From Cyanophora paradoxa CCMP329 (Eukaryota > Plantae > Glaucophyta), in NCBI GenBank assembly GCA_004431415.1, contig QPMI01000005.1, forward strand, positions 806,001 to 870,000: DNA of 64,000 nt, read 5' to 3'. Under the pieces are notes generated by a model that saw only the letters and a list, made by a program, of their open reading frames with translations, had not been told where the DNA came from and did no database searches. This document shows, one piece after another, positions 6,037 through 62,600 of this stretch (within the stretch, counting starts at the first letter, position 1; each line of letters opens with the position of its first letter). Both the position numbers and the translations under genes were made by a program.

Positions 6037-6051
6037 AATTCCGTGCTGATA

Positions 6052-9000: not shown

Positions 9001-10276
9001 CAAGAGAAAGAAAGGCCGAAGGACCTGCGCCAAGAACAAAAAGGCCAGGCAGGGTCCCGCGACGAAGAGAGAGGAAGACAGCGCTGAAGCAAACATGCAG
9101 CGGGAGCAAACGGGACAGAATTGAATTGGAGCTCGAGGATAGGCCCACAGGGTGGGAAGCCGCAGGGCGGCAAGGAACGCGCGGTACGTAGTCCAGCACC
9201 CGTGGAATTATCTGGTTATCGCGAACGGGGAAGGCAACAAAAGTACCACTTGGGCCTCGAAGGAGAGCAAACGAGGCGTCCGGTCCGGACCACCAGAGAT
9301 GCTGAGGCGGCGGTGCAGGGGCCTCGAGAACCTGGCGCCAAGTAGCCGGGAGCGCAGAGCACAGACTAGGGAAAAAGGAGTGGAGGGCGGAGGAGGCAGC
9401 TGCTGGAGCCCGGAACCCCCGGGCAGCACAATCCCAGATATCGCAGACCCGCAGCAAGCCGGACCGTGCACAGCGACTCCAGTCGACCTCGTCGCCGGGA
9501 GTTCTGAACAGAGGATTGAAGAAAAGAGGTTGGGATAACACTTCGGGAGAGTTACGAGGTTGACATACGCCCTGGCGCTGAGCCCACTCGGAGAGAGTCT
9601 GCTTCCAAATAGGAGGCAAGTCAAGTCTGTCAAGTGGGAGGCGGAGCGAGACAAGGCGGGGCCATAGGAAAAAGGTGCCAGCTGAGCGTCCAGTTTGCTC
9701 AAGAGGTACTCCTTCCAAGGAGCCGAACAAGAGGGTCAGCGAGCAAGGCCACCCACTTCATTTTCAGCGATAACGAAAAAGCTCGAATATCCGGGCAGTT
9801 GAGACCACCTTGACGCCACGGCAGAGGAGAAATATACTTCGAAAGCTGCCCGCTCACGCCAGCAAAAGCGCGAAGCTTCTCTTGCCATGTCGAATACTGA
9901 GCATCAGGGGGATCAAGCAAATATAGAGCATAATGTAGGGACCCAATAAATACAGCCCAGGCAAGGAGAACGCCGGAACGCATCGGCATGCGATAAGTCT
10001 TCGCTTGCTGGACACGGATATCAAGAGCAGCGTTCTTTTTCCGCCAGAACCGAGACAGATCGGGCTCTAGTGGAAAGCCCAGGTATTTTCGAATTTTTTC
10101 AGCGGGAGGGAGATCCGTCACCTGAAGACGCCGCCAGGGGCAGTCCTCGGCGCTAGGCCAGGCATGTGCGGGGATATCGCGGAGTGGAAGAAGGCTAGAT
10201 TTCTCGAGATTAATAAGCGCTCCAGAGAGCCGGCAGTATTTATCAAAGCACTCTTTCCAGAAAGGCAATTCGGTAA
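6052..10276 (-). mobile_element. 5'-truncated non-LTR retrotransposon (L1/Tx1-like LINE)
   Basis: T11 tract at 6052-6062 is the poly(A) tail on the minus strand. Exact 15-bp TSD AATTCCGTGCTGATA at 6037-6051 and 10277-10291. RT C-terminal motifs and a CCHC zinc knuckle are encoded inside. Confidence 0.93.
6143..10268 (-). pseudogene. LINE ORF2 remnant: RT C-terminal/thumb region, zf-RVT and a long Pro/Ser-rich tail
   Basis: GALINLEKS, KYLGFPL, GGLNCPDI..KMKW (9699-10268). Continues via PWKEYLL in a second frame, then LPPIWKQ..PLFFNPLF and CRVC-x8-HVFSECP (6143-9730). About two frameshifts near 9630-9730. Confidence 0.85.
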
Positions 10277-16100: not shown

Positions 16101-18832
16101 CGAAGCTGCCGGAGGGGGCACCTGGAAGTCGAAGTCGGCGCCGGCGTCGAGGAGGGCCCGAGCGGCGTCTAGGTGACCCCCGATCACCGCCAGCTGGGAG
16201 GGGAGTAAGGGGCGTAAGCAGAAAGCTAAGGCTGGGGGGAAGGGGGGGTACCTGGAGGGCGGACTGGCGGCCCTCCCCCCACGCGTCCGGGTTCGCCTGC
16301 CCGGGTACGTCAGTCCCGTGATTATTCTCGTACCCCTGCAAGGGGTCTGTCCGTTCGAGGAAAGGACGGGATGGCGTACCCCCGCGTCGAGGAGGACGCC
16401 GAGGATCTCGCGGTACCCCTTCTGGGCCGCGATCAGAAGGGCGGTAGCCCCCGACACGAACTGTCGGTCCACCTCCGCTGCGGCGAAAGGTTGGCGAGGG
16501 GGGTACGGGGCAGCCGGGGGGTACGGGTAGGGACCGCCGCGGGACAGGAGGAGACGAACGGTCGAGAGACGACCGTACTCAGCCGCGACGTAAAGCGGCG
16601 TGGCGCCCTGTACCCCCCTCAGCGACGCGGAGGATCCGCGAGGGGGGTACGCTCGCCTCGCGGGTGGCGACGTGGACGGCGCCCGGGGACGCGTCGAGGA
16701 GCACGCGAGCGGCGGCGGCCTCGCCGGCGCGAGCCGCAACGAAGACCGGCGTCTCGCCCACGGCCGACCTGCGCCGATTCCAGAGTCGGGAGGGGAAGGG
16801 GGTACGGGCGGAAGGGGGGCGGGGGTACGCGCACGGCAGGTCCGCCGTGGCGTTCGCCGCGAGGAGCGCCTGCGGGGGGTACAGGTACAGGATAAGGAAA
16901 AGGAGGAGCCGACGGGTACGGGGCGCGCGCCTTGATAAGTTCGGCGAGGCCGGCTCCCGCGGCGATGTGGAGGGCCGCGTACCCCCCCGCCCCCGCGATA
17001 TCCGGGTCCGCCCCCATCTGAGCGTCGCCTCAGATCAGATCAGAACTGATCTGATGCGATCTGATCTGAGCCGGGGGGGGGTACGGCGCACGTCCAGGAG
17101 GAGGCGGACCAACGCCTCATGCCTGTTCTCGACGGCGATCACGAGCGGCGAGGCCCCCGAGCGACCGTACCGCCTGCGGGGGGCGTCGGGGAGGGGTACA
17201 GGAGGGAGGGAGGAGAAGGGGGGTACGCACGCGTCCACGCGGGCGCCGCAGTCCTCCGCCAGTACCCGTACCACGTCGAAGTGGCCCGCCTCCGCCCTAA
17301 GGGGGTACCGGACTCAACGGAAGAGAGCCGGCAAGGGAAGCGGGGGTACGGCGCACGCGTAGTAGATGGCGGTAGCCCCCTCCCCCGAAGGGGCCTCAAC
17401 GTCCGCCCCGTGATCGCAGAGGGCCTGCCAAGGGGTACGTTAGACCGAGGGGAGGGGTACGGGACCCTTGTGGGGGGGGACGCACGATGACGGCGATGAG
17501 GTGTCCACCCTTCGCGGCGACGTGGAGCGGGCGCAATCGCGTGGCGGGGTCCACATAGTCCACCTGGAGGGGTGTACGCGCTCATGATCAAACGCGCGTG
17601 CAAAAAGAGAGAGAAGGCGAAAGGAGGTGCGAACGTAGGCGGCGGGTCGGCTCTTGTCGGGTTGGAGGTACGCCGCAACTCTGCGCACGTCGCCCCGAAC
17701 CGCTGCGGCGAAAAGCTCCGCGCTCGAGCGCGCCTCCTCCCTGGGTAAAGCGTGAGAACTGGGGAAAGGGAGAAAGGAGGGCAGGCGGGTACCGGGTGAG
17801 CTGCTTGGTGCGGTCCTGGGCAGGGCGGGGCGCCCCCACCCCGCCCGGCCCGTTCAAAAGGGCGTCCTCAACGGAAGAAGGCGGCGGTTCCCGCCCCGCC
17901 GCCTCCGCCCGAGCCGCCATCGACCTCGCCCGTACCCGTGCCCGGATCGCCGAGGCGACGTACCCCTCCGGGTCCAGCTCGTGCTCGTCCAGCCGCTCGG
18001 TACCCGGGGCCGCCTCCCCCCACCGGGGTACGTCGTGCGCCCGCCTCCGCTTGCCCCCGGGGCTGCCGTGCGAGCGATTCGGCGAGGAGCGGGACCGGGG
18101 AAAGAGGCGGGGGGAGAAGGGGGGGGGGGTACATTGCCATGTAGACGATGAGGGCCAACGCTCCCAGGGTAAGGAGGACCAGACCCAGGGTTCCGGCGTG
18201 CTTCGAGATACCCCCCCGCCACTGCGCGGGGCGTCGGCGGGGGCGGAGGACGCTTGCGAAGGGGGGGGGGGGGGGGGGGGTACGGGCGCACGCGGGACCG
18301 GGGGGGCTCCCGGTCCGACGCGAGCCGCGCGCGAGCGCGCTGCAGCTGCGCGTGGTGTGCTGAAAGGTTCTCGAGTCGCCTGTCGAGCTGCCGCGCCTTC
18401 GAATCGGACACGAAGCGGCGGCGGACGCCGCCGGCGCCGCCGGCGGAGCGCGCGACAAGCTGCGGAATGAGCTGCCGCAGGCTGAATGACGGGTGCAGGT
18501 TCTCCATCGGGGCGCGGCACGTCGGGCAGAGCGGCGCCCGCCCCGTGTCCCGTTCGAGGTACCGGACGGTACACTGCACGGCGGCGTCAGCGGGCTGCTT
18601 GTGACGGGCGGCGCTCGCTTTTCACTCCGAGAAAGAGAAGCGAACGAGCGGAAAGTGCACCTCGGCACAGTACGCGTGGCCTGCGCACGCGCGGGCTCGT
18701 CACGCACCGCGTGTTCCGCGGCGGGGCGGAGGGCGGACCGCAGACGGACTCCACGGCAGCGTCGAGAACGTCGAGGCATATTGGGCAGTGCATGCTGTCG
18801 AGCGCCATCGGGGCGGCCGCAGGTTCTGCCAT
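13123..18832 (-). CDS. Multi-exon protein: C3HC4 RING finger, one hydrophobic/TM segment, ~9-10 ankyrin repeats, short C-terminal domain; putative E3 ligase
   Basis: Spliced RING: CPIC..VCG|HAYCAE|C..CPTC. Hydrophobic TLGLVLLTLGALALIVYMAI splices in frame to PGGKRRR. Ankyrin exons: ELFAAAVRGD, RPLHVAAKGGH, GASPLVIAVENRH, AALHIAAGAG, GETPVFVAARAG, GATPLYVAAEYGR, GATALLIAAQKGY, GNTALHYAC. The 3'-most exons and the stop are less certain. Confidence 0.8.
13733..13992. repeat. ~130-bp tandem duplication inside an intron of the ankyrin gene, including the splice-donor region
   Basis: Two diverged copies of agctagcctcacctgaga.ggcccc...cccctggggggtacggcacgca (13733-13858 and 13870-13992). Confidence 0.7.
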
Positions 18833-19003: not shown

Positions 19004-19570
19004 GAATTCGGGAACTTAAGCGAAACTTCGGTGATAAGTTCCCGGATTCGGGAACTTAAGAGAAACTTCGGTGTTAAGTTCCCGGATCCGGGAACTTAAG
19101 CGAAACTTCGGTGTTAAGTTCCCGGATTCGGGAACTTAAGCGAAACTCTGGAATTAAGTTCCCGGATCCGGGAACTTAAGCGAAACTTCGGCGTTAAGTT
19201 CCCGGATTCGGGAACTTACGCGAAACTCTGGAATTAAGTTCCCGGATTCGGGAACTTAAGCGAAACTTCGGCGTTAAGTTCCCGGATTCGGGAACTAAAG
19301 CGAAACTCTGGTATTAAGTTCCCGGATTCCGAAGTTCGGGACATCCATAAGTGAATTCGCACACACCGAGACAAATGGCTAAAGCTGTAACTGAGGTGTC
19401 CATCTGTGTCAAGTCGAGAGATAAACCTACGGGACTAAGCCTTTCGGATATCGGACCGGGTGGAGCTCGATTTCCCGGATTCGGGAACTTGAGCGAAACT
19501 TCGGTGTTAAGTTCCCGGATTCGGGAACTTAAGCGAAACTCTGGTGTTAAGTTCCCGGATTCGGGAACTT
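19004..19570. repeat. 40-bp palindromic minisatellite (8 units, ~140-bp interruption, ~2.5 units)
   Basis: Unit GGGAACTTAAGCGAAACT(TCGGTG/CTGGAA)TTAAGTTCCCGGATTC at 40-bp spacing from 19010. Each unit contains the inverted repeat GGGAACTTAA/TTAAGTTCCC. Confidence 0.95.
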
Positions 19571-21567
19571 CGCGCCCTCGCGCCCGGCCCGCCGGGCCCA
19601 CAGCTCCGGGCCCGCGGCCAGGCTCACGGGGGTCCAGGCACCGTCCAGCGCGCGAGCATCATACATATATGCCGCCGCCGCCGCGCCGCGGCGCGCGGCC
19701 CGCCGGGATTCATATGCATCATGGCATATGCATGCGCCTAGGCCTTGCGCATGCACATGGAGCTTCAAGGGGTTTCGAGCCTCGGAGCTTCCGAAGTTCC
19801 ACGGAAACGGCAGACATCGATCGGAGCTCGCGATCGAGCTCGAGCTCGCAGCTGCAGCTGATCATGATCGAAGCATGAGTACATGCTCTGCAGCTGCACT
19901 GCGGCAGCTGATCATGCATATGGGTGCTGCAGCTAATTAAACGGCGATCGCGATCGCCACCATGCGCACTAGTACTGCGGCAGGACCGTCGGACACTCAG
20001 TGACTGTGACATGTTCAGTCGCGGCCGGCCGCGGCGCACGCCTCGAGCTCATGATCGTGATCCTGCAGCTGGAGCGGCGCAGGCGCCCGGCCGTACGCGT
20101 AGTCACACTGAGTACGTCGCGTACGCGTACGCGTATACCTCGTAGGTAACTTAGTAACGAGCGAGGTGCCGCAGTGCGCACGTGCCACGGTGGGCTAGCA
20201 CTGCACGCGTACGCTAGCGCTAGCGCTAGATCTCCCCTCAAGCTCGACCTATACATGTACATGTCTGATCATGATCATGAGCCTGCATTGCATGAGGCCG
20301 CGCCATCTTAACGCCGGCGCTGTTCAACGATTCGATCTTTCTTTCTTTCTCAGCAGCTTTCTTTCTTCACACTAGTACTACACTGTGACAGATCTACGTA
20401 TACTAGTACTTTGCCAAAGCCGGCGCGTTCACGTGCACATGTTCACGCCCTGGGCAAATTTGAAGCTGATCATGAGAAAGCACACATAAACTTGAAAAAT
20501 CGTGAACTTGGAAGCATGGGGCGACGGAGCCGGACCCGGGACTCCGGGATCGTCATTATAACTGATATCGATGCACTGATAAGAGCTCGAGTGTCACGAT
20601 GACATGTGTACCTGCACATGCACATATTCTGTTCGGTACGGCCCGATTAAACTAGGGGGAGCGATTGGCGAGAGACCGAAGCGCTTAACACGAGCTAGTA
20701 CGCATCTTAATGCATATCCAATGCTCAGTCTCTCGCGGACGCGGTACAAAAATTTCCTAGATGAATGGCCATACAAAGGCGACGACGAAAAGGCCAGTTT
20801 CGCGGCGAGCTAGCCGGCTAGCAGTGCGCCCGGCCGGCGTCTTATTGCCCCAGCGTTCGAGTCCCGGGAAGGGCAGTTGGGGGGAGCGGGGGGGCCTGGG
20901 CGGGCCTTGAGCTGCCGGGGCGCAGCGACCTCGAGGTCGCTTTCCGCAGTCCGGGGGATCAGCTCCGAGGCCAACTTTCGCGCGGCGAGCTTCTGGCGGG
21001 AGACCAAAAATGTTTTTCATCTCGGCTGATCTAAAATGCACTTCCTACCTGCCCGGTCTCGCGCCAGTCACTCGCTGTGCTCCGCTTTAATTTCGGCCGG
21101 GACTTTGAACTCGCGGAAAAGGGTCTAGAAAGACGAACTTCGGAAGGCTGGGAAGCAGTGGGAACTGTTTTTAGAAGACGAAGAAAAAACAGCCTTCCCG
21201 GTACCCGGTATCCACTCCGACTCCTCCAGTACCCGGTACTTTAAAATTCGATTCGCTCCCCCGTCGCTCGAGCCGCCGCCGGGCCGGCCAACCGGCGGGG
21301 CCGGGCCGCGCGCGCGGGCCCCGCCGCGGCTCCCGCGGGCGGCGCGGGGTTGCGGGTCCCGGCCGGGGCCGGCCCGGCAGCCGCCGGGCCAGCGGCCGGC
21401 GGCCCGGCGCCGCGCGCGGCGCGCCGCAACCGCCGGGCGCACGGCGGCGGCGCGGCGCGGCCGCGCGGGGGCCGCCAGCCTGGCGCCAGGCCGGGGTCGG
21501 GGTCCGGGGGTACAAGGTAGAAGCTTAAGAGGTACGCGTCACGGCGTGCACGAGCCTGAGCCTACTA

Positions 21568-21829
21568 CCGTAGGGCACTTAAGTACCGCGGGCACTTAAC
21601 TAACGCGGTACCAAATTAACGCGCCAAAAGTTTGTTAAAACGCGGTAATTTGGTGCCGCGGTAATTTGCTGCTGAGAGCTCGCCCCATACAGTACCCCAT
21701 CGAATTACTGCCCCATGCAAGCCTCAAATTTTTAAAACCGCGTTGATTTGGTACCGCGGTATTTCGCTCAGAGGAGTGCCATTTTTGAAACCGCGTTAAT
21801 TAACGCCGCAGTAATTTAGTGCCCGACGG
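21568..21829. mobile_element. MITE, Tc1/mariner (Tc2/pogo-like) type
   Basis: TA on both flanks. TIRs CCGTAGGGCACTTAAGTACCGCGG and (revcomp) CCGTCGGGCACTAAATTACTGCGG. 262 bp, non-coding, internal ccgcggtaattt-like repeats. Confidence 0.8.
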
Positions 21830-23008
21830 TAGGCTACTACTAGCCTAATACGCCACTAATTCGCCACTACTAGTAATACGGTACGAAATCGACGCGGGCA
21901 GTGCGCATGCGCAGTGCGCAGTGCGCACTGGCAGCGGCACTGCGCATGCGCAGCTGCCGCAGTGCAGACTGCAGTGCAGTACTAGTCGAACTTCGAACTT
22001 CGAAGCCTTGAAGCCGCAGCTGCACTGAGCCTGCAGGCTGCGCCGCTGCAGTGCATGCAGTTTGCTGGACTAGCTTTAATTTAGGACTAGCTCCCGGTAC
22101 AGGCCCCGAGTCCCGACTCTCGGCGACTCCCGAGTCCAGAGGGCTACGCGGCCTGCGCCAAATGCAACGTTGACTCGCCGCCAAGTCGCCGAGTTGCCGC
22201 CGAACGCGCAGGGCGAGCTGGAGCGCGGCGAGCTGGATTTGAGGAGCACGCGGCCGCGGGCGAGTCAGCTTTCTTTCTTATATATATTGCTTCGCGCTGT
22301 GTATACGTATCTTCTCAATCATCAGCTGCAGGCTGCAGCTTCACCTAGCGGGCCTGCCTGGCGGCTCCGAGGCTCGCTTTATGATCAACCTTTTTTGTAG
22401 CACTGCCGCAGAGCAGTATCGAAATTGAGCTGGCAGCTGCAGCCTGGTAGCTAAGCCTGAATTCCAGCAGCTCGGTGGCTCCGAGGCTCCAGCCGCGGGC
22501 CCAGCGTGGGATCTGGAGCCGCGGCCGCTAGTTTAGAGTCTTGAGACTCCGGGATCCGGATCCGCGGCCGAAACTTGGGGAGTCCGCGGCCGGCGAACGC
22601 GTCCGACGGTCTGTTGGCTGCACGGCACGAGCTCAAGCCAGGCTCGTTCTCACAGCTTCAATTTGCAGCTTGCGCGTGCCGTACACGCAGCTTGCCCTCT
22701 CTGCAGCTGCCCCCGGCCCAGGCCCGGGGCCCCGCGGCCGGGTGGCCTCCAGCGGAGCTGCGCATGCTCACGTGAATGTTAAGCGTGTATACTTATACGA
22801 ACGCAGCTGCATATATATTCACAGCTGCATGTAGGTGTATGCTCGTAAGCAGCTTTAGTACTGCAGCTGCGGGAGCTTTCCAAAGATGAGGTCTCTATGT
22901 TCCCATAATATTTATGCATTTGGCGGCGCCGGCAGCAGCTGCAGTTCGTTGCATCGGCGACCGATCGCTCGTTCGTATAGACGGGACGGCCGCCGGGGCT
23001 GGATACCG

Positions 23009-34428: not shown

Positions 34429-34628
34429 CTCATTCGCTTCTCGTCTCTTCTCGATCGATATCTGTCTCTGTGTCTGTCCATTTTTATTGTCGTTTTTGGC
34501 TCTTTGTCTTGTCGTTCTCCGTGCTCTTGTCTTAGGTTTTTAGTTTCTTTGTCCCTGTGCCCCCTGGGCACTGCGGCACCCCCCGCAGTGCTGGTGTCGA
34601 GAGACTGGCCGGTAATTCACCAACAAAA
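34429..34628 (+). mobile_element. Very short 5'-truncated copy of the same LINE (3' UTR and degenerate A-tail)
   Basis: Matches revcomp of ~6060-6250 (tcgtctcttctcg...tgccccctgggca...ccgcagtgctggtgtc.agagact..ggccggtaattcaccaacaaaa). Flanked by direct repeat CAGCCGGT at 34421-34428 and 34631-34638. Confidence 0.88.
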
Positions 34629-35149: not shown

Positions 35150-37595
35150 TCACGGGGCGCCGGGGTCCGGGGGGGCGGGAGGGGGCGCGATCCCCTCCAT
35201 CAGCGCCCTCTCCAGCTCGTCGGCGAGATGCGAGGAGGCGGGTGCCGGGGCCGGCGGAGGGGGGGCAGGGGCTGGGGCGGGATCAGGGGGGTACGAGCTC
35301 GAGGGGGCGCCCGAGAGGGCCCAGAGGGCCGGCAGGGGCACGTGGAGGGGGCGGGGGGCTGCTGGCCTGCGGGAAGGGGATGGGAGCGCGCCGAGGAAGC
35401 CTGGGCCGACGTCGACAGGCCCTGCAGGGCCGGCTGGGGTACGTAGACGCCGCCCGCGGAGGAGGGAAGGGGCGCAGGGCGCGCGGGGGGAGACGCGGCG
35501 GCGGCGGCGGCGGCGGCGGTCCCAGTACCCGACCCCGACCCCGACCCCGCCCCCGTCCCGGGGAGCCGGGCCTCGGCGGCCTCGGCGCGCCTGCGGAGGG
35601 CCTCGGCGCGGTTCACGGCGCTGTCGCGCTGCGCGCTAAGCGTGCTGCACTCGCGCCGCGCCGCGTTCAGGTCCGCCTCGGCCTCCACGAGGCGCCCGTT
35701 GGCCGCCGCCAGCGCCGCCGTCAGCCGCCGGACCTCTGCCTCCCCGGCCGCCCGCTGCTCCCGCTCCGCCTCCAGCTCCGCCCGCGCCCCCTCCAGCTCC
35801 GCCCCGGCGTCCGCGGCCTGCTCAGATCAGATCAGATCAGATCGGATCGGGTCGGATCTGAGCGGAGCGGAGCAGAGCAGGCGCGCCTCCCGCCTCTGCT
35901 CCTCGAGCTCCCGCCTGAGCCGCTCATTCTCCGCCGAGAGCCGCTGGAGCGCCGCCGGCTGCTCGCCCGGGGCCCGCGCCCCGAGCCGCACTAGCTCCGC
36001 CTCACGCTCCCGAGCCTGCGGCGCCGCCTGAGCCGCGCCGAGCTCAGGTGAGCCGGCTCGGGCGGATATCGCGAACCCGCCGCTCGAGCTCTTCGACCCG
36101 CGAACGAAGCTCGCCGGCCTCCGCTCTCGCCGCGTTCGCCTGAGCTCAGATCGATCAGATCAGCTGAGGAACGCGGGTAGGGGGGTACGCTGGCACCTGC
36201 TCGACCAGGCCCCGGAGGGGACCCTTCTCGTCCGACCCCCCGCCGGCCCGGGCCTCCGCCAGCGCCCTCTCGTAGTTCTCCGCAGTCGCCCGCCGCCGCC
36301 GCTCCATGCGCCTGAGCCGCCGCTCGGCCGCCCCCGCCCTCCGCGCCGCCTCCGCCGCCTCGCGCCGGAGCGCGCCCCGGTCGGCGCGGCGCCGCTCGAG
36401 CGCCCGCTCGGCCCGCTGGAGCTCGGCGGGGTCGACCGGCCGCCCATCCCGCTGCGCCTCGGCCATCTGGAGGAGGAGCCGCAGCGTCGCCGCCGGCATG
36501 TCGTCCGCTGGCGCCGCCGCCGGCGCCGACGAGGAGGAGGAGGACGACGATGCGGGGGGCGCCGCCGCCGCCGCCGAGGAGGACGACGAGGAGGGGAGAG
36601 ATGCGGAGGTGCCTTCGCCGCCGTTGCCGTTGCGCCGCGCGTCCGCCGGCGGCGGGGCGGCACCGGCGGCGGCGGGTCGTCGGGCTCGGGCCCGCCCACT
36701 GTTCCGCCCCGCCCCGCCCTCCTCCGCCGCGCCCGCCCCGTCCGCTGCGCCCGCGTCCTCCATCTCCTGCTCCTCGTAAGGCGGGTGACCGTTCCCCTCG
36801 CCTCCTTCCGCGTACCCCTCCGCCTCTCCCTCGTCTGGAGCGATGTCATGCGGGCGCGGGGCGCGGCGCGGCGCGCGCCGTGGCGCGGGCGGCGGCGCAC
36901 CGGTCTCGGTGGCGGGCTCATGCGACTCCTGCTTGATCCCGTCGTCCGCGGATCGGGGAGGCGATGAGCCCGCGCCCGTGCTCAGGCTCCGGTCGTCGTC
37001 GGGGGCCCGCCGCCTGCGCTTCCGGCCGGGCGCGCCCGCTCTGCTCGAGCGCGACCCGCCCTGTTGTCCCGCGTAGTCCGGTTTCGACTCCCGCTGAAGC
37101 CGATCGCGAAGCGCGATCTGGGGACCGGCCATCGGGCAGCCGCTCTCCAAGTCGTTTTCCTGAAGGTCCTCTGTGCGCGCCGCGGCCGCGGCCGACCGGT
37201 GAGGAGCGCGGGGGGAGGGGGGCGCGCGGCCGACATCGGCTTGAATCGCAGAGTCGCGCACTGAATTTCTTGCCGCTAGCCGCTCTCTTCCTGGTCTTTC
37301 TATACTCGGTCCTGGCGTCGTCAACCATGAAGCCGGTCTGGCGGCGGACGCGGAAGTGAGCGTTCGCACGGCGCGCACAGTGAAGGCCGGCGGAGCGCAC
37401 TTCTCTGAGACAAGCGCATAGAAGAGGATCGTCGCGCCACTTGGTCGCGTAGTCCTCGTCGTCTTCGAAGTTCTCGCCCGGATAGAGGGCCTTGATCAAC
37501 TCCTTGGCGGGTAGGCGCTCGGAAGCGTCGTCCAGGTTCTCCCAGCGGTTCCAGTCGAGTTCAAGTGGATTCACGGCGCCCGCATGGTCGCCCAT
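35150..37595 (-). CDS. Uncharacterised multi-exon protein: globular N-terminus, low-complexity middle, coiled-coil C-terminal half
   Basis: Exon 1 MGDHAGAVNPLELDWNRWENLDD...CACLRE|gt. Ala/Glu/Arg coiled-coil blocks (AELQRAERALERRR, EAEADLNAARRECSTLSAQRD). No recognisable family. Confidence 0.55.
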
Positions 37596-37802
37596 CGCTG
37601 CCTCGCGGCGTGCGGACCGCCGCCGCGCCTACGCTACTCGTTTGCAACGGGCGAGTTGGGTGCGGCTGTGCTCGATGCGGGTATCTGCTGCGGTTGCGCC
37701 GCGGTCAAATTCAGACGGGGACAGCAATTCTTTGTAGGGGGTACAAGCGGCCCAGCCTTCCCGCCGAGCGAGGCAGCGCGCGTGAGCCAGCATCACGAGG
37801 CG
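37596..37802. promoter_or_regulatory. Probable bidirectional promoter (~200 bp)
   Basis: Divergent ATGs at 37595 (-) and 37803 (+). Confidence 0.5.
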
Positions 37803-40800
37803 ATGGCGGCGGCGCCGAACCAGCGGGAGTTTGCGCCGCTCGCGCCGGCGGGGCACGAGTACGGCTGGCGCGACGACCACGCCCACAACGACGCGATGAT
37901 GCAGCAGCTGCACCCACGCTCGTCTCCCGCGTCGATGAACCTGCAGCTCCTGCAACCGGAGCTGGGCGCCGGCACCTACGGACGCGTGTTTAGGGCAGTC
38001 GGCGAGGACGGGAACGTCGTGTGCGTGAAGCAGGTTCCACTGCGTGACCTGCCCGACGCAGCGCGACGCGAAGCGCTGAACGAGTGCCGAGTGAGCGTGG
38101 CGCCGCGCCCGCAGCCGCAACGTCGCCGGCCCCGCTCACTGGCCCCCGCGGCGCAGGTCATGGCGTCGCTCTCGCATCCGAACATCGTCCGGTGCGCTCC
38201 CGCGAGCCGCCCGCTCCCCGCGTCGCGCCGCCCGATCCAGCCCGCCTCGCCGCTTCGGGCGCGCAGATACATCACCTCGTGGCTCGACGACCAGGTCCTC
38301 AACATCGTCACGGAGTACTGCCCGCACGGCGACCTCTCTCAGCTCATCCGCGGCCGCACGTCGTACCTCCCCGAGGAATCGATCTGGTCGCTGCTCGTCC
38401 AGATCGCCTCGGGACTCGGCTACCTCCACGACCGCCGCATCATCCACCGCGGCGCGCCCGCTCTCCTCTGCTGATCTCCGACCTCCGCTCCGCTCCGCTC
38501 CTCCGCTTACATTCTGCTTCGATCAAATCAGATTTGAAGCCCAGTAACATCTTCTTGGGGCCGGGCGAGGCGGTCCGAATCGGGGACTTCGGCCTCGGGC
38601 GCGCCCTCTCCGGCGCCACGCTCGCCCGCACGCAGACGGGTACGCCCCTCTACATGTCCCCCGAGGTGCACGAGGCTGCCTAGGCGCCCCTACTTCCTTC
38701 GTGACTCGCCCGGCCGGCCGGCCCCCCGCAGCTCTGCGAGGAGAAGCCCTACAACGAGAAGGTCAGACAAAATCTCAAGCTTAGCCTTAAGGCAACCTAG
38801 ATCTCAAGCTCAATCCAAGGATACAAGCCTAACCTTAGCTTGGCTCACCCGAAACCAATCGCTTATCTCTTCTGATCGCTTATCTCTCTTTCAGAGCGAC
38901 ATCTGGGCGCTGGGCGCGCTCATGTACGAGCTGGCCGCCCTCCAGCCGCCCTTCGTCGCATCCAACCAGATCGCCCTCGCCCGGTTCCCCCCCTGAACTC
39001 CCTCCCCCCCTTACGAGATCGAATTCTGAGGGGACCGGTCCGTCCGCCAGGCGAATCGTGGGGGAGCCCCCCGCGCCGCTGCCGCGCTGCTACAGGTACC
39101 CCCTCGCCCCCGCCCCTCCCTTTCATCCGCCCCTACCCCCCTTCTTCTCAAACCCCGTACCCCCCTCCAGCGTGGAGCTTACTTTCCTGATCTTCTGGTG
39201 CCTCGAGAAGGACATGGACCGACGCCCCAGGTTCGCTGGAGAGAAAGGGAGGGGAGGGGGGTACCGTACCTCGCGCTAGGTCCCCCTCTGGCGCGAGCCC
39301 AGAGCTCAGGCTCCGCCCGCCCTCTGCGCTCTCCTCCCCTCTTCCTCCCCCTCCCCCGCCCCTGATCGCCCCGTCGGTGGCTTGCACTGGGTTCCTCTCC
39401 CCGCTAGCGCGATCCCAGAGCCCTGCTCCCGTCCCTAACCTCCCCCCCCCCCCCCCCCCCCCCTCCCCCGCAGCGTGCAGGACGTGACGCAGTTCTCGGC
39501 GGTTCGGCTCCGCGTGGAGCGCGCCGCCTGGGCCGACCGCGAGCGCTCCCTGCTCCAGGCGAGCACCCCGCTCTTCAAGAAACGCGCCGAGAGAGCTCTT
39601 GGAGCCCCAGAGATTCTCTGACGGCGGCCGCTTAGAGATCTCTTAGAGATTGCTGGCTTTTGAGCTTCACGCTCGCCCCAAGCCCGTGTAGGGCTCTTAG
39701 AGACCGCGCTTAGAAAGCTCTTGGAGCTCCAGAGACTCTCTAAGAGCTCCCGTTAGCTTAGAGCTCCTAAGGCCCCCCTTGAGGCCCCTAGAGATCGTTG
39801 AAGCTATAGGCGAGCCGGCCGGCCCTGAGGGCTTAGAGCTTCTTAGCTGCGCTCAGCTTATGGGCCTTCGTCCGCCTCGGGGCTCACCCAGCGCGCCAGG
39901 CGGCTGAGGAGGCGGGCCGGCGGGCGGCGGAGCAGCAGAGGGGCGCCGCGGCCGCCGCGCAGCGCCTCCAGAGCGACGCGGCGTCCATCCGCGACCAGCT
40001 GGCCGCGGTGCGCGCTCACCTGAGCCGAGAGGAAGGCTCGCCTGAACTCACCTGAGCGGGCGGCAGGCGGCCGACGAGGCGGCGGCGCTGCGGAGGCGCG
40101 CGCGGGAGGCGGAGGACGCTGCGGGGCGCGCCTCGGCGCGGGCGGCGGCGGCCGAGCGCGGGGCGGACGCGCTGCGCGCCGCGCTAGCGGAGCGGGACGC
40201 CGAGTGCGAGCGGATGGCGTCGGAGCTCGCGCGGGCGATCCAGGCCGCCGCGCAGGTACGCTCCTCTCCCTCCCTTGCCTCTCTTGTCCTGCCCGTCTCA
40301 GATGATCATGAACAGGCCTCCCGCGAGAACGACCGGATGCGGGAGCAGCTCCAGGAGTTCAGGTGAGCTCTCTCGGCCCGGGCCGCCCGGGCCGAGCTCA
40401 GGCGTACCCCTGCGGCAGGGCGCGGGAGGCTGTTCTGCTTGAGTACAAGCGCCGGGTGACGGGGCAGACCTCCGTCTCGAGCCCCGCGCGGGCGGCCCTC
40501 GCCGCGGCCCTCGCCGGCGGCGGCGGCGGCGCCGGCGCAGGGCCGTCGCCCCCCAAGGCCCTCCTCGCCCACCTTCAGGTGCGCGGGGGCGTCGCGTGGC
40601 TGTGTCTTGGTCGCTCATGTAAAGGGGGGTACGCGATCGTTCTCAGGAGGGGAGCCCGCCGCCCATCCGCGCTTCGTTCGCGGCGGCGATCGCGGCGGCC
40701 TTGAAGGATCTCGAGGGTACCCCGGCTCCGGCCCCCCCGGGGGGCCCCGAGGCCAGCCCGCAGGAGCGGAGGGGCGCCGGCGGCCGCCCGTCCGCCGAGC

Positions 40801-44336: not shown

Positions 44337-45360
44337 TTATCGCCTGGAGACCTTCATGCGCGGCTGCGCCGCCCGCGCCTCCCGCCGCTCCATCTTCCGC
44401 CGCTTCTTCTCATCCATCTCCTCCTGAGAGAGACGGAGATGAGAAGGAGAGAAAAGTTGAGAGAGGTCGAGAATTTGATGCTGATGAGTTCAAGGCGTAC
44501 CGGCTCCTCCTGCTTGGCGAACCACCAGGGGTAGATAATGTAGACCCAAGCCTTGTACAGCGCGAAGGCCGGGATCTTTCGGTACCCCAAGGTTAGATGT
44601 CGGGATACACGGAAGCGCGAGCCGGCGGGGTTACGGCCGCGAACCACGAGGTAGACGAGCCAGAACCAGTCGGAGATCATCGTACCCGCCTGCACGAAGA
44701 GTGTAATGTAAAGGACGTCGAAATAATACCTGCGGGGCGGGGCGGGGCGGGGCGGGGCGGGCGGCCGTCAGCGGCAGAGGCGCGGCGCTGGCGCGGCGCG
44801 GCAAGCGTCGCGGCCTCGGGGGTACGCACTCGACGATGCCCTTCGAGTCCAGGTCCTGACCGGCGTCGTCGATCTGGCCCTTTTCGTCCAGATCGACGCG
44901 CGCGAAGCTGGAGAGGTCGGAGTAGATCTTGTAGTAGACGAACGAGGTCACCGCGAAGCCGATCCAGTGCCACGTGCCGAAGGTCCCGAAGTGGAACAGA
45001 ATGCGGTAGAGCACGAACGCGGCCTGCGGTGCGCGGGGAGCGTCGGCGGGATGGAAACGGGCGCCGCGGGCGGGCGGGCGGGCGCCGTGGGAGGCGGCAG
45101 GACGGTAGCAGGCGCTAGCTATGGCCGCGGAGGCGAGCGGCGCGACCGTCGGTGGCGGGCGCGAGGACCCAGCGCACATTGACGCCGGCAATGTACTTGA
45201 GGTGCTGCTGGAGCTTCTTCTTGTTGCGCTCCGCGACCTTCTTCTGCGACTGGTTCGCCTGCGCGCGCGGGGCCTCCCGTCAGCGCCCTGTGCGCCGCCC
45301 GGCAGGCTCGCTGTTCGAGGCGGGCGCGACCCTCCGAGCCGCTCCAACCGCCTCCACCAT
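44337..45360 (-). CDS. TMEM208: TMEM208 / SND2 family ER membrane protein
   Basis: Spliced protein M|ANQSQKKVAERNKKKLQQHLKYIAGVN|AAFVLYRILFH...DAGQDLDSKGIVE|YYFDVLYITLFVQ..SDWFWLVYLV|IPAFALYKAW...|EEMDEKKRRKMERRE...RR*. This is the typical SND2/TMEM208 pattern. Confidence 0.9.
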
Positions 45361-48766: not shown

Positions 48767-49636
48767 CGCCTTTCGGGATTCCCCGGCCGCGCGGCCCGCG
48801 CCCCCCCTTCCCTCACCCTCCCGCCTCCCTTCCCCCGCTACCCCCGCCTCCCGAGCTCTGTGCATTCCATTCCATTCCGGTCTGCTTCTTTGCCTGGCAC
48901 ACCTGCAGAGCGAAGAGAGCTTGCACAGTACTCGTGTTGCACAGAGCATGATGCGCAAATGATGAGACTGCAGCTGAGCACGTTACCCGAATTCGAAATT
49001 CCCGAATTCGACGCGGTCGACGTCGACGTCGACCGTACGCGTCGACGTCCCCGGGGCCCGCGCCGCCCGGGCCCCGGGCCCGCCGGGCCGGAGTCGACGT
49101 CCGCGCGCGGAATCGCCGGGCCCGGGCCGTGTAAGCCCGTGTATATATATACCGTACATGTACAACGGTAGACTCTGAGACTCCGCAGTACGTACTACGG
49201 TAAGACTTCGTGATCATCGCGATTCAATGATTCGCGATCGCCGCGGATCCGAGCTCGAGATTCCCCCAAGTTCCGCCGGCCCGGCGGGCCGAGTTGCAAA
49301 CTTGCAATTGGCGAGTCACTGAGTTGGCGATCGCCGGTCCACTGTCCGACGCCAACTCGGAGGGGGGTACGGGAGAACGCCGTGGTAGAACTTCGGAACT
49401 CAAGTTGGCCTTCCGCGGCGCCGCAATTTGCCAAAAAAGTTCATCATGATCAAGTTGGGCCGCCGCGCCGGCTGTAAGTCTGCCATGCAGGCCTAGGCCT
49501 AGGCTGCAGCTGTGACTCTCAGTGTCACAGTGTCGATCACAGACTGTGAAGTCTGTGAGTCACTGATGCCTGATGACTCAGTGTCAGAGAGTCAGTGATG
49601 CCATGATGAGTCAGCGGATTCACTGACTCAGCGCAA

Positions 49637-49899
49637 CCGTAGATCTAGAACACTTAAGTAATGCGCGCACTTAATTAATGCGCCCCCGAATTAATGCGTT
49701 TTCCGGCAGCAAAACGCATTAATTCGGGGGCGCATTAATATCGAAACGTTAAGAAACTGCATTATGTACCCCCCAACCGCGGCCAAAAAGCTTCAAAACG
49801 CATTAATTCGGGGGCGCATTATTAGCCACACTAGGGGCCGGTCCGGGTCCAAAAACGCATTAATATCGGGCGCATTAATTAAGTACTAGTGTTCTACGG
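49637..49899. mobile_element. MITE related to the 21568 element (different subfamily)
   Basis: After removing one 6-bp insertion from each end, the TIRs read CCGTAGAACACTTAAGTAATGCGC and CCGTAGAACACTTAATTAATGCGC. TA on the right flank. Internal aaaacgcattaattcgggggcgcatta repeats. Confidence 0.82.
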
Positions 49900-50024
49900 T
49901 AGCGCGCCGGCGCCGGCCGCGGGCGCCGCCAGCGCGCCCCGGCGGCCGGCGGCGGGGCCCGGGCCCTGGCCCCACCGTGGCACGCCGGCCCCGCGCCGGG
50001 CCCATTAAATTACGCCGGCCGGCG

Positions 50025-50120
50025 CGTAGGGCACTAAATTACTACTGCGGCTACTACTACTGCCGCACTGCGGCAGCCTGGCAGTGCGGCGTTAATTAAC
50101 GCGGTTTCGAAAATGCGGCA
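50025..50120 (-). mobile_element. Terminal fragment of the 21568-type MITE, expanded by nested insertions
   Basis: cgtagggcactaaattact...tgcggcgttaattaacgcggtttcgaaaatg matches the revcomp of 21777-21829. Confidence 0.78.
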
Positions 50121-50638
50121 TGCGCACTGCTGCCACTGCGGCATGATCATGATCAGCGGCCGCGGCTTCTCGCGCCGGCGGGATATCGATCAGCCGCCAT
50201 CAGGCTGTCATCAGCGAGCATGCGCGCTGCGGCAGCACTGCGGCAGCTAGCGCTGTATGCGCAAGTCGCAGCGCAACACACGAGCTCCTTGCGGCCGCGG
50301 CCGGCTTCCGAGTTCCTCGCTATGGCCATGATCGGGTCGTCGCTATAGCTAGCGCTAGCGCTGGGCACACACGTAAAGCTACGCATGCGGATCGGGACCA
50401 CATGCATATGTATATATGTGCGCCTAGCCTAGTAGCTGTACTAGTATACGTATAGGCCTGCAGCCGTGCAGCTGCAGCTGCGCATTAGCATGCAGGCCAG
50501 TTGCAAGGCGTGACGGGTCCCCGCTGCCGCGGCTGCGAAATTTTAAAGGCGGAAGACGCGTACGCGTACGCAAGCCTTAGCACGCGGCGAGGCGCGTCCC
50601 GATCCGGATCCCCCTCGACCGCGATCGCGAGCACACAC

Positions 50639-53600
50639 ATGTACACAAGTGCACATCGATGGGCGCTGGCGCTGCTGGCGGTGCTCGCGGCGGCGCTGGC
50701 GGCGATCGCGGCGGGGCAGCAGGCGGCGCTCTTCGCGACACCCGCGTCGCAGCAATTCGACGATGGAAGCGGCGAGGCTACCTACGCTCCGAACACCCAC
50801 AAGTCCTGGTGCGCATAGTGGCATCGTGCCATATATGCAAGATGCATCACATCATGATTATTAAATATTATAAAACTTTTTCAATGGCGTGCGCAGGCTC
50901 ATCACGGCGCCCGAGGCCCAAGTCGTCGCCCTCCGCTTTACTTCGTTCGACACGCGCTGGGGAGACTATGTGAGGGTTCGCGCACTTGAACCGCTCCCCG
51001 GTCCCCTATGCATATGGACAGCTTTCACGAGCGGGCCTCGTCGCAGGCATACGATGGAAGCAGCACATCTGCACCGCGGCTCAGCGAACTCAGCGGGTGG
51101 CTCTATCCGCCTATCCTTGTGGCGTCTACGGGGCGCACAATGCTCGTCACCTTCGACTCCGACGACTCAAGCTCGTATGGCGGGCGGGGCTTCGCCGCCA
51201 ATTACACGGCCGGAACCCCCGGTACTGTTTCCCGCAGCATACTGGAAGTAGTGCTGTTTCCCTGCAAACACTCCCTGTAACATTGACGTATCCACGTGCG
51301 CGTTCGCCGCAGTTGATTTCAACCTAAATGCGTCCAGCGTGGAGCAGTCCTTCGAAGATGGGAGCGGGGTAGCTGACTACGCTGCGAATACCCACTTTTC
51401 CTGGTACACAACCACCTGCGCGCACCCTATAAATTAAAGGTCGATGTCCTGCACCTGACGAATGGGGCTACGCCTTCTCCTCAGGCTCATCAGGGCACCC
51501 GAGGGCAGCGTGGTCGTCCTCCGATTCACCGCGTTCGACACTGAGGCGGGCTACGATGTCGTCCGGGTTCAAATCCGCGTCGCGCTACCCATTATTCAAT
51601 TCATAGATATATACTATATATACTAGATATACGTATACTAGATATATCCGCGTCGCGCTACACATTAGCAATGCCGCAGGGCTGCACAACTTCAATATTT
51701 TTATGTAAGCTTAACGCGCGCCGCAGGTGCATGACGGGAACAGTACCTCCGCGCCGCAACTCCTCAGCCTCAGTGGGCAACCAAATTATTTGATCTGGCC
51801 ATGGAGAGCGTCGACGGGGGGCGCGATGTTCGTCTCGTTCTACTCCGATTGGAAATTGCATCGCCCGGGATTCAACGCTTTTTATTCGGCCGGTGCCCGC
51901 CCTAGAATGCACTGTGCAGCTGCGTTCCGGATCCCGTCCGCACTCTTCTCATTCGCGCCGCAGCTTTTTACGTAGAGGGGCGTCTGCGCATCGCCCTGGA
52001 TGCGAGCAGGACGGAGCAGCTTTTTGACGACGGAAGCGGCACGGATACCTTCTATCAAAACACGAGCAGGCTTATCACAGCCCACGAGGGCGAGATCGTC
52101 ATCCTCCGCTTTCATATTACTCCAAAGGGAGACTATGCCAGGGTTCGTGCATGCGATCTATGTCCCGGCCGTGGCCAGCCGAACGGGAAAGCACAAGTGA
52201 GCGCCGGTGCAGGCATACGATGGAAACAGCACATCTGCGCCGCTGCTCTTCCAGTTCAAAGAGAACCTGAGCTACTTAGAACTCACGTATTTGTATGGCT
52301 CTACGGGCCGCACAATGCTCGTCGTCGTAGATTCCGGATCCAATCGCGGCACCTCGGGATTGGGATTTGCCGCGTTTTACAGGAGCTCGGCTGCAGCTGG
52401 TGCTTAAAGCGTGTTCCAAGCGCACTTAACCTGTCTTAATTAACCTATCCCCGCAGTTCCCGTTTTGGAGGGGCGGCTGCGGTTTTATCTTGATGCGACC
52501 CCCGCGACCCAGCAGTTTGATGACGGAAGCGGCGAGGCTAACTATGCTCCGAACTCCCACAAGTCCTGGTGCGCAGCGCGACCTCAAATACCTAGTCTAC
52601 AATTGCCGCGCTTGGTGTGCACTGGCCTTACATTGTTAAGAGGCGTCCCTGCCGCACTGTTGCCTGCAGTCGATCATTTATATTTCTGTTATCGTGAGCT
52701 GATACTGCTGGCCGTGAACGTGCTCCGGATCCTCAGGCTCATCAGGGCACCCGAGGGCAGCGTGGTCGTCCTCCGATTCACCGCGTTTGACACTGAGGCG
52801 AACTACGACGTCGTCCGGGTTCGAATCCGCATCGCGCTTCTCAATATTCATAGATATGTAGTATAATTTATAAGCTTGAGACGCGCCGCAGGTGCATGAC
52901 GGGAACAGCACCTCCGCGCCTTTACTTGTAAGCCTTAGTGGTCATCCGGGCGTGCCGTTGGGGCTTGCTTCGGAGGGGCGCGAGATGCTCGTCACCTTCG
53001 ACTGCGGTAGCACTACCAACCGCGCAGGATTTAACGTGTCATACTACGCCGGTACTCAGCTCAGCTGCAGGCGCACTCCGGATGTACCGTATCAAATCCG
53101 GCGCAGTTTCGCTTCAGCACCTGTTGCTCAATGCAACGAGCATGGAGCAGTCCTTCGACGACGGGAGCGGGGTAGCTGACTACGATGCGTACATCCGGAA
53201 GTCCTGGTGCATGTTTTTTCTTCCTTTCTTCCACCCTTCTTCCCTCCTTCCTTCAAAGCTTTTCTCCCTTCTGCCTTCCCCCTAGGCCTCCCCGTCCCCC
53301 TCTTCATCCCCAGACGTCTCGTACTACGTATTTATCCATGACGGGGCAGGCTTATCACGGCGCCCGAGGGCCAAGTCGTCACCCTCCGCTTTACCTCGGT
53401 CGACATGCGCTGGGGAGACTATGTGAGGGTTCGCGCACCCGAACCGCGCCCCGCCGCCCGGCCCCTATAGCTTTTGTGAGCAAGCCCTATTGCAGGCATA
53501 CGATGGAAGCAGCAGTGCGGCTGTGCGCATTTTTGAGCTCAGCGGGCAGCACAGCTCGCAGTTTGCATTTGCATCTACTGGCCGGGTGATGTTTGTGGAG

Positions 53601-59600: not shown

Positions 59601-62600
59601 CACAACCGGCCGGCTCTCGTTCCTCTCGGGCCTGACTAATTTCAAGGACTTGGATTCCAATTCCAGTGAAGCTTGGTTCCGCTTTGTTCCACTGCGATCG
59701 GGGTGCGGCGCCGTCTGTGCACGCTTCTATCGTACACTTATTGTTTTTAATCATGCGGGGCTCTGGACCCTGCAGCAAACTTGTTATCTCCACCTGCTCG
59801 CCGTCGACTTCGTTTGACACGGTAGTGGGGCTCCTCGCGGCTTCCGTCTGTCCTTTGGCATCCGCAGAAAAAGCTCTGATCGCCGCAAATGGTGCGAAAC
59901 CATAATCGATATCAGAACAAAGTCAACAGCTAATACGTTGCGCGAAGATGACGCTGCACCGGGACTGTGCCCAGAGAACGATGTCCTAGGCCTGAAACTG
60001 TCGGTGCTTTCTGCATCGGTTTCTAATGGAACCCTTCTTTATATCGTTGTAAAAGGTCATTTTATTCAATCTTTGTCTCCTTGTATATGGCCGAATCGAC
60101 TCGGAGCTCGGCAGGATACGAGGGAAAGCAGCAGGGCGCTTTCCGTTTGTACGTCAAATTTGAAGATCCCCCACCGACGCCCGTCCCTTCGCCCACGCCT
60201 TCTCCGCTGCCGGCGCCGAACACTACACTGGTCCCCTGCTCCAACGCTTCCCGCATCGGAGCCCAGGCATCGATCGCTCAGAGGACTGGCCCGGCTTACC
60301 TTGCACGTAATGACAGCGGAATGGGAGAGGCCTGGTTCAGCTTCGTTCCTCCTTATAACGGGTTCGATTACTCTGATACAAGGTCGTCCGCCTTTTCTAT
60401 TCTGATTTCGACGTGCCTGCAGGCTGCTGATACTTTCGACGTGCTCATCGGTTACGAATTTCAGCTCCTCGATCCTGCTCCTGAATGCTGCTGCGTGCCC
60501 CGTCTCGTCATTTTCAAACTCTTCCATCGTGGCCAGTGCAGGTATGCACCTTCAGCTTAATCCATATTCGAGTTTATATGCCTTCGGCACTAGCGCTGAG
60601 GCGAGTCGGAAGTTTTTTGACTCGGAACGCAGACGACGCTCCAGGCTGCGCTCTGAATTTGCGCGGTGCGACCTTGAAGGTCCCCGTGTTCGCTGGGGTG
60701 CAGTACTACGCCGTCGTGACAGGTTCGATTGAGGGCATGCCTTTGACTTCGCTCGTTTCGATTTCTGACTCCGCAATGTATGTACCTACAGGCCCCAACT
60801 CCGAGAACAGGATGTTCGAGCTCGAGGTGGCGCTAGTGCCTCTCGCCCCGCAGAGCGATCCCCAGAGAACGCTTTTTCTGGAATACGGGCCTGGCAGGCG
60901 CGTTACGGCTTTGTCGTGGGGTCGTCGCATTGGCCCAATCGCGAGTATGAGCTTGGCCGGCGCTGCGGACGGCGTGATTGCGACCGGAACAAGCGACGGC
61001 ACGGCCCAGCTGTGGAATCCAGTTTCTGGCTCTCTTGTCTCGCAGATACGCGCGCACTCGGAAAAGGTCAGCGCGGTAGACATATCTGCGGACGGAGCTC
61101 TCCTTGTCTCTGCGAGCTCCGATGCTTCGATGCGTCTGTGGTTCATTTCGTCGCGGCTAAGGATCGGCGAGCTGATGCATAAACGAGCAGTAAATACTGC
61201 TGTGTTTTGGCAGTCGCATCTCATCGCCTCCGCCAGCGACGATGGCAGCATTGTTGTCAGAGCTGCCGAGACTGGGAACATTGAGTGGCAGAGGACTGCA
61301 GCCCACGACGGCTCTTCGATCCTCGCACTTGCGTTATCGGCCAACGGCACGCTGCTCCTGTCTGGCTGCGACGGTGGCAGAGTCAGAATCTTCAACATTT
61401 CCGCGAAATCGAGCGGCTCAAAGGCGAAGAAGCTCGGGGATCTGAGCTCGCCAATTCAATCTGTCGCTTTGTCCGGGGACGGCCTTCTGGCGGCGGCGGC
61501 GGTGGCGCCGACGAGGAGGGGATTCACACAGCTAGAAGAGCCGCTTGTCCGAATCTGGCGGGTCACAGATGGGACACAGATGCAAGCCATCACAGGGCAC
61601 GCGGCAGGAGTAACTGCTATTGTCTTTACTTCAGACAGCCGTCAGCTCTTCACATCTAGCATCGACGGTCTTGTGCGGGCGTTCGCGTCCACGACCGGAC
61701 AGCTCATCGCCGTGTACAGAAGCACCACTCGCATGGCGCCCGTCGAGTTTCTTGCTTTGTCGCCCGATGGACGCCACTTGGTGTCTTGGAGCGATCGAGC
61801 GGCTCATGTGTTTGGTATAAATCGGACCGCTTCCGACGCCGTTGCGCCCCTTCCGATAGAAGTATGGAAATTCGAAGGTGCTAAGAATTCACATCATTCT
61901 GGATAATGAGCGCTTCGTCTAACAGCTCCGTCGACGTCGTGCAGATGCATTTGCCGCTGTTCAGAGCGATCGCGAATCTTCAACGCCGTCTTTTGTTAGC
62001 CTGGACCTGTCATTCACGAGCGCGCGGTCTAGCATCGGTTTTCCTCCGCCCGACGCGGCTGCAGTCTCAAGCAGCAGTTGGAAGATCACGGCACCGAAAG
62101 GCTCGATAGTCGTGTTCAATTTCTCGAGCCTGTCGATAACGGAAGGCTTTGACACTGTATCGGCTCGTTCTCTTTTATCCTTGGTCTCTTTACAAAATCG
62201 CTCCAGTACTGAGCATTGCGAGCAGATATACAATGGAATCGATGAAACACGAGAACGGCTGCTGCAATTTAGCGGAGATCTTACGATGCTGAAAGCTCAG
62301 CTTGGCGCCACGGAAGTGTACAGCTCTCACTTGACGAGCGCTCTGCACGTCGTATTCGAAGCTGGGTCTGGTCAAATCGAAGAGGAAAACAGCATGAAGT
62401 CGAGGTTTAATGCCGTAGCGTATTTCAGTGCGTTCGGTATCTCAGTTAAAATCTTCTCTTGCATTTCACATTCTGATTCCACTCGCTTTACGCAGTTCCG
62501 GTTGCGCGCGTGCGTTTGCAGAGAGAAGAAACCACGATTCTTGAATGTCGGCATCCGATACTCTCGGACACGTTGCCCGCAACTGCTTGGTGCGTTTTAC

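Follow-up and report, generated by a model that had tools for sequence, protein, structure and literature searches.

The locus considered here is the recognisable end of a MITE, about 55 bp long when its insertions are left out, within a window of 64 kb (64,000 nucleotides, GC content 61%) of the Cyanophora paradoxa CCMP329 assembly; all positions are those of the window. The fragment matches one end of an intact copy that lies elsewhere in the window. As a short non-coding sequence with inverted ends and TA on both sides, this copy has the features of a Stowaway-like (Tc1/mariner-type) MITE, and the read depth over the end common to both copies is several-fold above single copy. All comparisons of the MITE within the window are made with this one intact reference copy. 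Local alignment downstream of 50115 detected nothing convincing of the remaining MITE, and only the end of about 55 bp is recognisable at 50025-50115. The features that carry the argument are collected in Table 1.

Table 1. Positions of the MITE copies, scars, and associated segments in the 64-kb window (X, duplicated triplet; rc(X), its reverse complement)
Feature	Position	Strand	Details
Intact reference MITE, 262 bp	21568..21829	-	Terminal inverted repeats starting CCGTAGGGCAC / CCGTCGGGCAC; TA at 21566-67 and 21830-31
MITE terminal fragment, ~55 bp without insertions	50025..50115	+	Matches the reverse complement of 21780-21830
9-bp duplication	50040..50060	.	First copy (TACTGCGGC) with TAC expanded to 2 copies, then TAC x3 opening the second copy; 18 extra nt, unexplained by the C/G grammar
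Outer scar, X=TGC	X 50061-63, C 50064, G 50084, X 50085-87	.	Ancestral GGC at 50088-90; the stack 50061..50090 consists of three 8-nt insertions
Inner scar, X=GCA, intact	50065..50075	.	Target is the rc(X) arm made by the outer TGC event
Inner scar, X=CAG, intact	50074..50084	.	Target extends from the rc(X) arm of the outer scar over its centre G
Second triple stack	19984..20011	.	X=GAC and X=ACT scars in or on an older X=ACA scar; the ACT target spans the junction from the ACA event
Scar X=GCA in one dispersed-repeat copy	34568..34578, in copy 34438-34628	.	Copy 6056-6246 is without exactly these 8 nt
GC-rich palindromic segment, 124 bp	49903..50026	.	First base C, last base G; bounded by TAG at 49900-02 and 50027-29; splits the outermost MITE end

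Domain-bearing ORFs are located at 60485-61906, 37584-38474, 15981-16739, and 44631-45347 (WD40, protein kinase, ankyrin, and TMEM208); they appear to be ordinary host genes, avoided by the scars described below. For the WD40 ORF, an exact look-up gave no match, and the only homologues retrieved were distant WD40 proteins of bacterial type. Several exon-sized blocks of 40-124 bp occur in the same order in 50735-51755 and 52209-53453 with 87-93% identity, which suggests tandemly duplicated paralogous genes. An apparent short intron at 50803-50897 carries the near-palindromic heptamer GTGCGCA at both ends (noticed by eye only), and these ends could pair. The region 6000-10000 is strongly purine-skewed (AT skew up to 0.55, GC skew 0.28) and contains a 1195-aa ORF on the minus strand with no Pfam match; its left edge is a dispersed repeat in common with 34438-34628 (82% identity). 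A largely palindromic 40-bp unit forms an array at 19006-19329 (8.1 copies) and 19472-19570 (2.5 copies), with 89-94% matches.

The central part of the MITE fragment, 50061-50090, reads as stated in the original prediction, according to which three footprints nested inside one another collapse exactly to the ancestral MITE sequence. A mechanical rule, by which every X-C-rc(X)-G-X 11-mer is reduced to X (where X is a triplet), was run on 50025-50115. Three times it cuts out 8 nt, and what is left is TGCGGC, the six bases of the intact MITE copy, followed by the 14 nt of 50091-50104; the resulting 20 bases are identical to the reverse complement of 21791-21810. The threefold collapse is thereby exact, and the rule, together with the six ancestral bases, fixes each of the 24 inserted ones. 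The arrangement of the layers differs from the predicted one: the footprints are indeed stacked, with two of them inside the outer TGC scar, but the inner two overlap by 2 nt and do not form concentric shells with the outer one. The outer X corresponds to a single TGC in the intact copy. Because both inner targets use bases that the TGC event created, the outer event took place first, and this part of the order is secure; the GCA and CAG events, which had also been assigned an order, can be exchanged (a path count gives two valid orders with the same sequence). Stacking of this kind builds long palindromes, as is directly readable in 50061-50090, where 50062-50071 pairs with 50081-50090 in a 10-bp stem (-13.9 kcal/mol as single-stranded DNA, z-score -3.9).

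The stack does not account for the whole locus, as 18 nt beyond the reference MITE are still present after the three collapses. The plain repeats act-act and tac-tac-tac, which had been predicted to lie alongside, are found at 50041-50060. In a breadth-first path search over collapse operations leading from the locus to the reference MITE, the latter is unreachable by 3-bp rules alone; a path exists only when the permitted steps include, in addition to three 3-bp duplications, a 9-bp tandem duplication (unit TACTGCGGC). The return to the ancestral MITE is exact for the stretch of six bases, while for the full locus it also requires the three 3-bp duplications and the 9-bp one, which was absent from the earlier account. 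The 9-bp duplication is older than the stack, since the stack sits in its second copy only, and the course of events would have been the 9-bp tandem duplication, then the TGC event, and then the GCA and CAG events in either order.

Independent reads support the long form of the locus. A 987-nt contig of a 2012 run (X19) spans 49997-50983 with 0 differences and 0 gaps, so 50061-50090 is not an assembly artefact. Four runs compared over 48800-51800 gave identical contigs and none of them contains an allele with fewer scars; all 20 runs containing the stretch look like one strain, so that they show neither occupied nor empty alleles.

The X-C-rc(X)-G-X grammar of the locus is present across the 64-kb window far beyond chance. 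With a 3-nt unit it has 74 perfect matches, compared with 3.2 in order-2 Markov simulations performed in 2-kb blocks. The same pattern with other pairs of centre letters gives at most 12 matches (10-12 for CC, GC, and GG), and swapping the centre order to G..C reduces the number to 10; longer units give 3 C..G matches at k=4 and 0 at k=5. The 74 matches comprise 44 different triplets, with no target-triplet preference detectable relative to the triplet background of the tracts around them (chi-square 33.3, 31 df), and the positions flanking the scars exhibit a mild G/C excess only. A spacer-less class, X-rc(X)-X, accounts for 338 non-trivial matches at 273 loci, compared with about 42 in simulations, and is co-located with the C/G class (r=0.81 per 2-kb bin). 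The enrichment is 25-fold for the C..G form and 8.7-fold for the spacer-less form; for variants with a single spacer, be it C or G, it amounts to 2-3.6 fold. Only 3 of the 74 C..G matches fall within ORFs of at least 220 aa, though such ORFs cover 36.5% of the window. Variants of the C..G form with one violation (115, compared with 87 for swapped centres and 61 in simulations) are only modestly above the controls; therefore, most of the recognisable scars are little mutated. Iterative collapse of both classes removes 378 events with 2,426 inserted bases, equal to 3.8% of the window and concentrated in roughly 15-22 kb of non-coding tracts.

The nesting at 50061-50090 had been taken to indicate repeated re-targeting of the same few bases. 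Whole-window collapse of the C/G class proceeds in three rounds of 72, 3, and 1 events and reveals three multi-hit sites: the locus itself and the second triple stack, with three events each, and the GC-rich site 49273-49287 with two. Their number was compared with forward simulations in which as many scars as were removed are put back at random positions of the collapsed sequence. A uniform distribution over the 64 kb is rejected, but this is only another expression of the regional clustering. When placement is limited to footprint-rich intervals (7-21 kb), 1.6-4.5 multi-hit sites of the C/G class are expected and three are observed, whereas two or more C/G triple stacks, of which two are observed, arise in 0.5-5% of the simulated runs (P 0.005-0.05). 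Taken together, the two classes form 9 triples and 27 doubles. The tightest null predicts 33 multi-hit sites, in line with the 36 observed, and 3.9 triples compared with the 9 observed (P about 0.02), a count possibly inflated among spacer-less triples by slippage of 6-nt palindromic units. Looser nulls give a stronger excess for the two classes together. Stacking is mostly what the extreme local density of scars predicts, with a modest excess of deep stacks that constitutes weak evidence for preferential re-targeting.

Of the predicted re-targeting, the modest excess of triple stacks is what stands, while the count of multi-hit sites follows local density and the triplets exhibit no preference. 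A stronger version, in which the transposase or the local chromatin prefers the palindromes of earlier scars, so that scars seed scars in a self-reinforcing manner, is rather unlikely. The two C/G triple stacks within 64 kb, the surplus of triples in both classes under the tightest null, and about seven insertion events within a 9-base ancestral stretch at the 50061-50090 locus point towards it. However, sites hit at least twice are no more numerous than expected, the targets are free of triplet preference with flanks only mildly G/C-rich, slippage could account for some of the spacer-less triples, and the nesting statistics come from a single window.

The arrangement at 50061-50090 is probably best explained by three successive X -> X-C-rc(X)-G-X insertions in the MITE end, which most likely represent excision scars of a cut-and-paste DNA transposon with a 3-bp duplication of any sequence and 5'-C...G-3' ends, and whose stacking stems mainly from density, with at most weak extra re-hitting. 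Such a transposon would retain its 3-bp target duplication on both sides and leave a terminal base with each flank. The triplet of any sequence on either side of the scars may be ascribed to the element because a 3-bp target duplication would leave it, and the constant left-hand C and right-hand G because an element with 5'-C...G-3' ends would leave its terminal bases; both letters thus presumably derive from the element ends.

The chemistry of excision might involve hairpins on the flanks. Each flank would be sealed as a hairpin consisting of the duplicated triplet and the terminal C of the element, and host nucleases would open the hairpins off-centre, giving X-C-rc(X) at the left end and rc(X)-G-X at the right end. 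The palindromic overhangs would then anneal on their common 3-nt rc(X) and, after trimming of the flaps, form exactly X-C-rc(X)-G-X; as the overhangs would be complementary only over rc(X), the same 11-mer would result whatever the opening point. Excision without the end base of the element would produce X-rc(X)-X, and opening of the hairpin at its tip would produce X-X, a plain retained duplication. Two facts are left unexplained by this simple model: the enrichment of single-spacer variants with either letter, and the 9-bp duplication. None of the scar sites within the window contains a visible donor element, the 20 longest ORFs of the window include no transposase domain, and an inverted-repeat scan for a source element with a 3-bp duplication gave mostly chance pairs.

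Hairpins on the flanks, their opening by the host, and end joining that leaves footprints are known from hAT, Transib, RAG1, and a MULE (PMC5499845). Like the footprints of hAT, Transib, and MULE elements and the P nucleotides of V(D)J recombination, the scars have palindromic flank copies enclosed by two target duplications that were kept: each of the 74 matches begins and ends with X (by construction), and the bases between the two X include rc(X), the reverse complement of the adjacent flank, in a P-nucleotide-like manner. In contrast to those footprints, which are heterogeneous and accompanied by 5-9 bp duplications, the scars have one exact 3-nt-unit form with fixed C and G, occur at dozens of sites per 64 kb, and are stacked on themselves.

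CACTA elements produce 3-bp duplications of variable sequence and start with CACT, their ends being CACT...AGTG (PMC4423477, Table 1). The element deduced from the scars resembles the CACTA / En-Spm elements (CMC superfamily) in its 3-bp variable duplication and in ends that begin with C and finish with G. The 44 triplets and the chi-square value given above are indicative of a 3-bp duplication with no sequence preference, as in this superfamily, whereas only the terminal C and G of its ends can be deduced from the scars. The inverted-repeat scan of the window found no CACTA...TAGTG ends with a duplication, the same 20 ORFs contain no CMC transposase domain, and no description of an X-C-rc(X)-G-X scar for CACTA elements was found in the literature searched.

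Canonical Tc1/mariner footprints keep a few terminal bases of the element between two copies of the target duplication, which is TA in every case. They are similar to the scars in having element bases between the duplications and in being partly palindromic due to the inverted-repeat ends; however, the palindrome originates there from the element and here from the variable target triplet. Polymerase-theta templated insertions, on the other hand, are short inverted copies of the flanks at repaired breaks, variable in length and template position and with no fixed C/G letters. The scars share with them the short inverted copies of flanking sequence but have a fixed insert of 8 nt with C and G in a fixed order (74 compared with 10 swapped).

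The latter comparison bears on an origin independent of transposons, in which a nuclease producing 3-nt staggered breaks, or snap-back synthesis of the polymerase-theta type, would generate the palindromic insertions. Fill-in and snap-back at a 3-nt staggered break could in principle give X-X and X-rc(X)-X, and the window exhibits no donor element. Yet the constant C..G would need a fixed external source, such as element ends, and end-joining templated insertions vary in length, whereas the unit here is strictly 3 nt; such an origin is improbable. Hairpin-type excision footprints as such are known; the single exact form, density, fixed C/G letters, and stacking of the present scars are undescribed in the literature found by a full-text search, which included papers on CACTA or rice footprints, with most subscription journals outside its reach.

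The direction of change at the MITE end can be read from other copies. Contigs of two other runs begin exactly at 50085/50086, where the locus rejoins the sequence common to other copies, and loose ends at this point show the left-hand context that the MITE end has in its short form. Occurrence in the intact copy and in read contigs of other copies supports the short form as the ancestral one. An unrelated dispersed repeat in the window has one copy with and one copy without a GCA scar (Table 1), so the 8-nt units were inserted into sequence that was already there. An ancestral long form, with the short form at 21568 derived by deletion, is extremely improbable, even with one intact comparison copy only in the window, as it needs three precise nested deletions, while read contigs of other copies join the short-form left context straight to 50085, 74 instances of the 8-nt unit occur in unrelated contexts, and the two repeat copies differ by its presence or absence.

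The 124-bp GC-rich segment at the outer edge of the locus is a candidate for a small element that has not been excised, with a 3-bp target duplication, or else for an old stack of scars. Taking out 49903-50026 together with one TAG restores a continuous MITE terminus, and position 49904 is a breakpoint of seven read contigs. The right part of the segment is similar to the MITE end, so that a simple insertion does not account for the full complexity of the region; a search for relatives of the segment in the window gave matches to GC-rich low-complexity DNA only. Both MITE copies adjoin a GC-rich palindromic tract, 21269-21510 in one case and 49903-50026 in the other, and the two tracts are about 70% identical to each other. 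These tracts may be old scar stacks.

A second MITE family is represented on the far side of this segment, at 49637-49899; its inverted ends begin with CCGTAGAACAC, and TA flanks it on the right. Contig depths over it add up to about 60-120 times single copy in each of four runs and, therefore, the family has on the order of 100 copies. The ends of this MITE carry two spacer-less scars (AGA-TCT-AGA at 49641-49649 and AGT-ACT-AGT at 49882-49890), and it adjoins the 50025-50115 fragment through the near-palindromic 7-mer TAC-G-GTA, which both have in common.

As a rule, excision footprints are scarce, untidy, and difficult to identify, whereas the exact form of the present scars is common enough to be counted. 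Counts of scars could serve to quantify former transposon traffic even at places from which every element has disappeared, and stacks offer a relative clock among scars. The scar form predicts the end structure of the responsible element, which is a testable prediction, and would imply a repair pathway of unusual fidelity, combining hairpin opening with joining at a 3-nt microhomology. The stack at 50061-50090 is the clearest demonstration that scars become later targets, although alone it does not prove preferential re-targeting. It is possible, though doubtful, that iterated excision scars constitute a DNA-generating process, with intergenic tracts, including GC-rich blocks like 49903-50026, built largely of stacked scars and not of inherited sequence. 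Each scar would then add 6-8 bases of palindrome, with an obligatory C and G in the C/G class, and would itself be hit again, and stacks such as 50061-50090 would be readable layer by layer, the oldest being the outermost.
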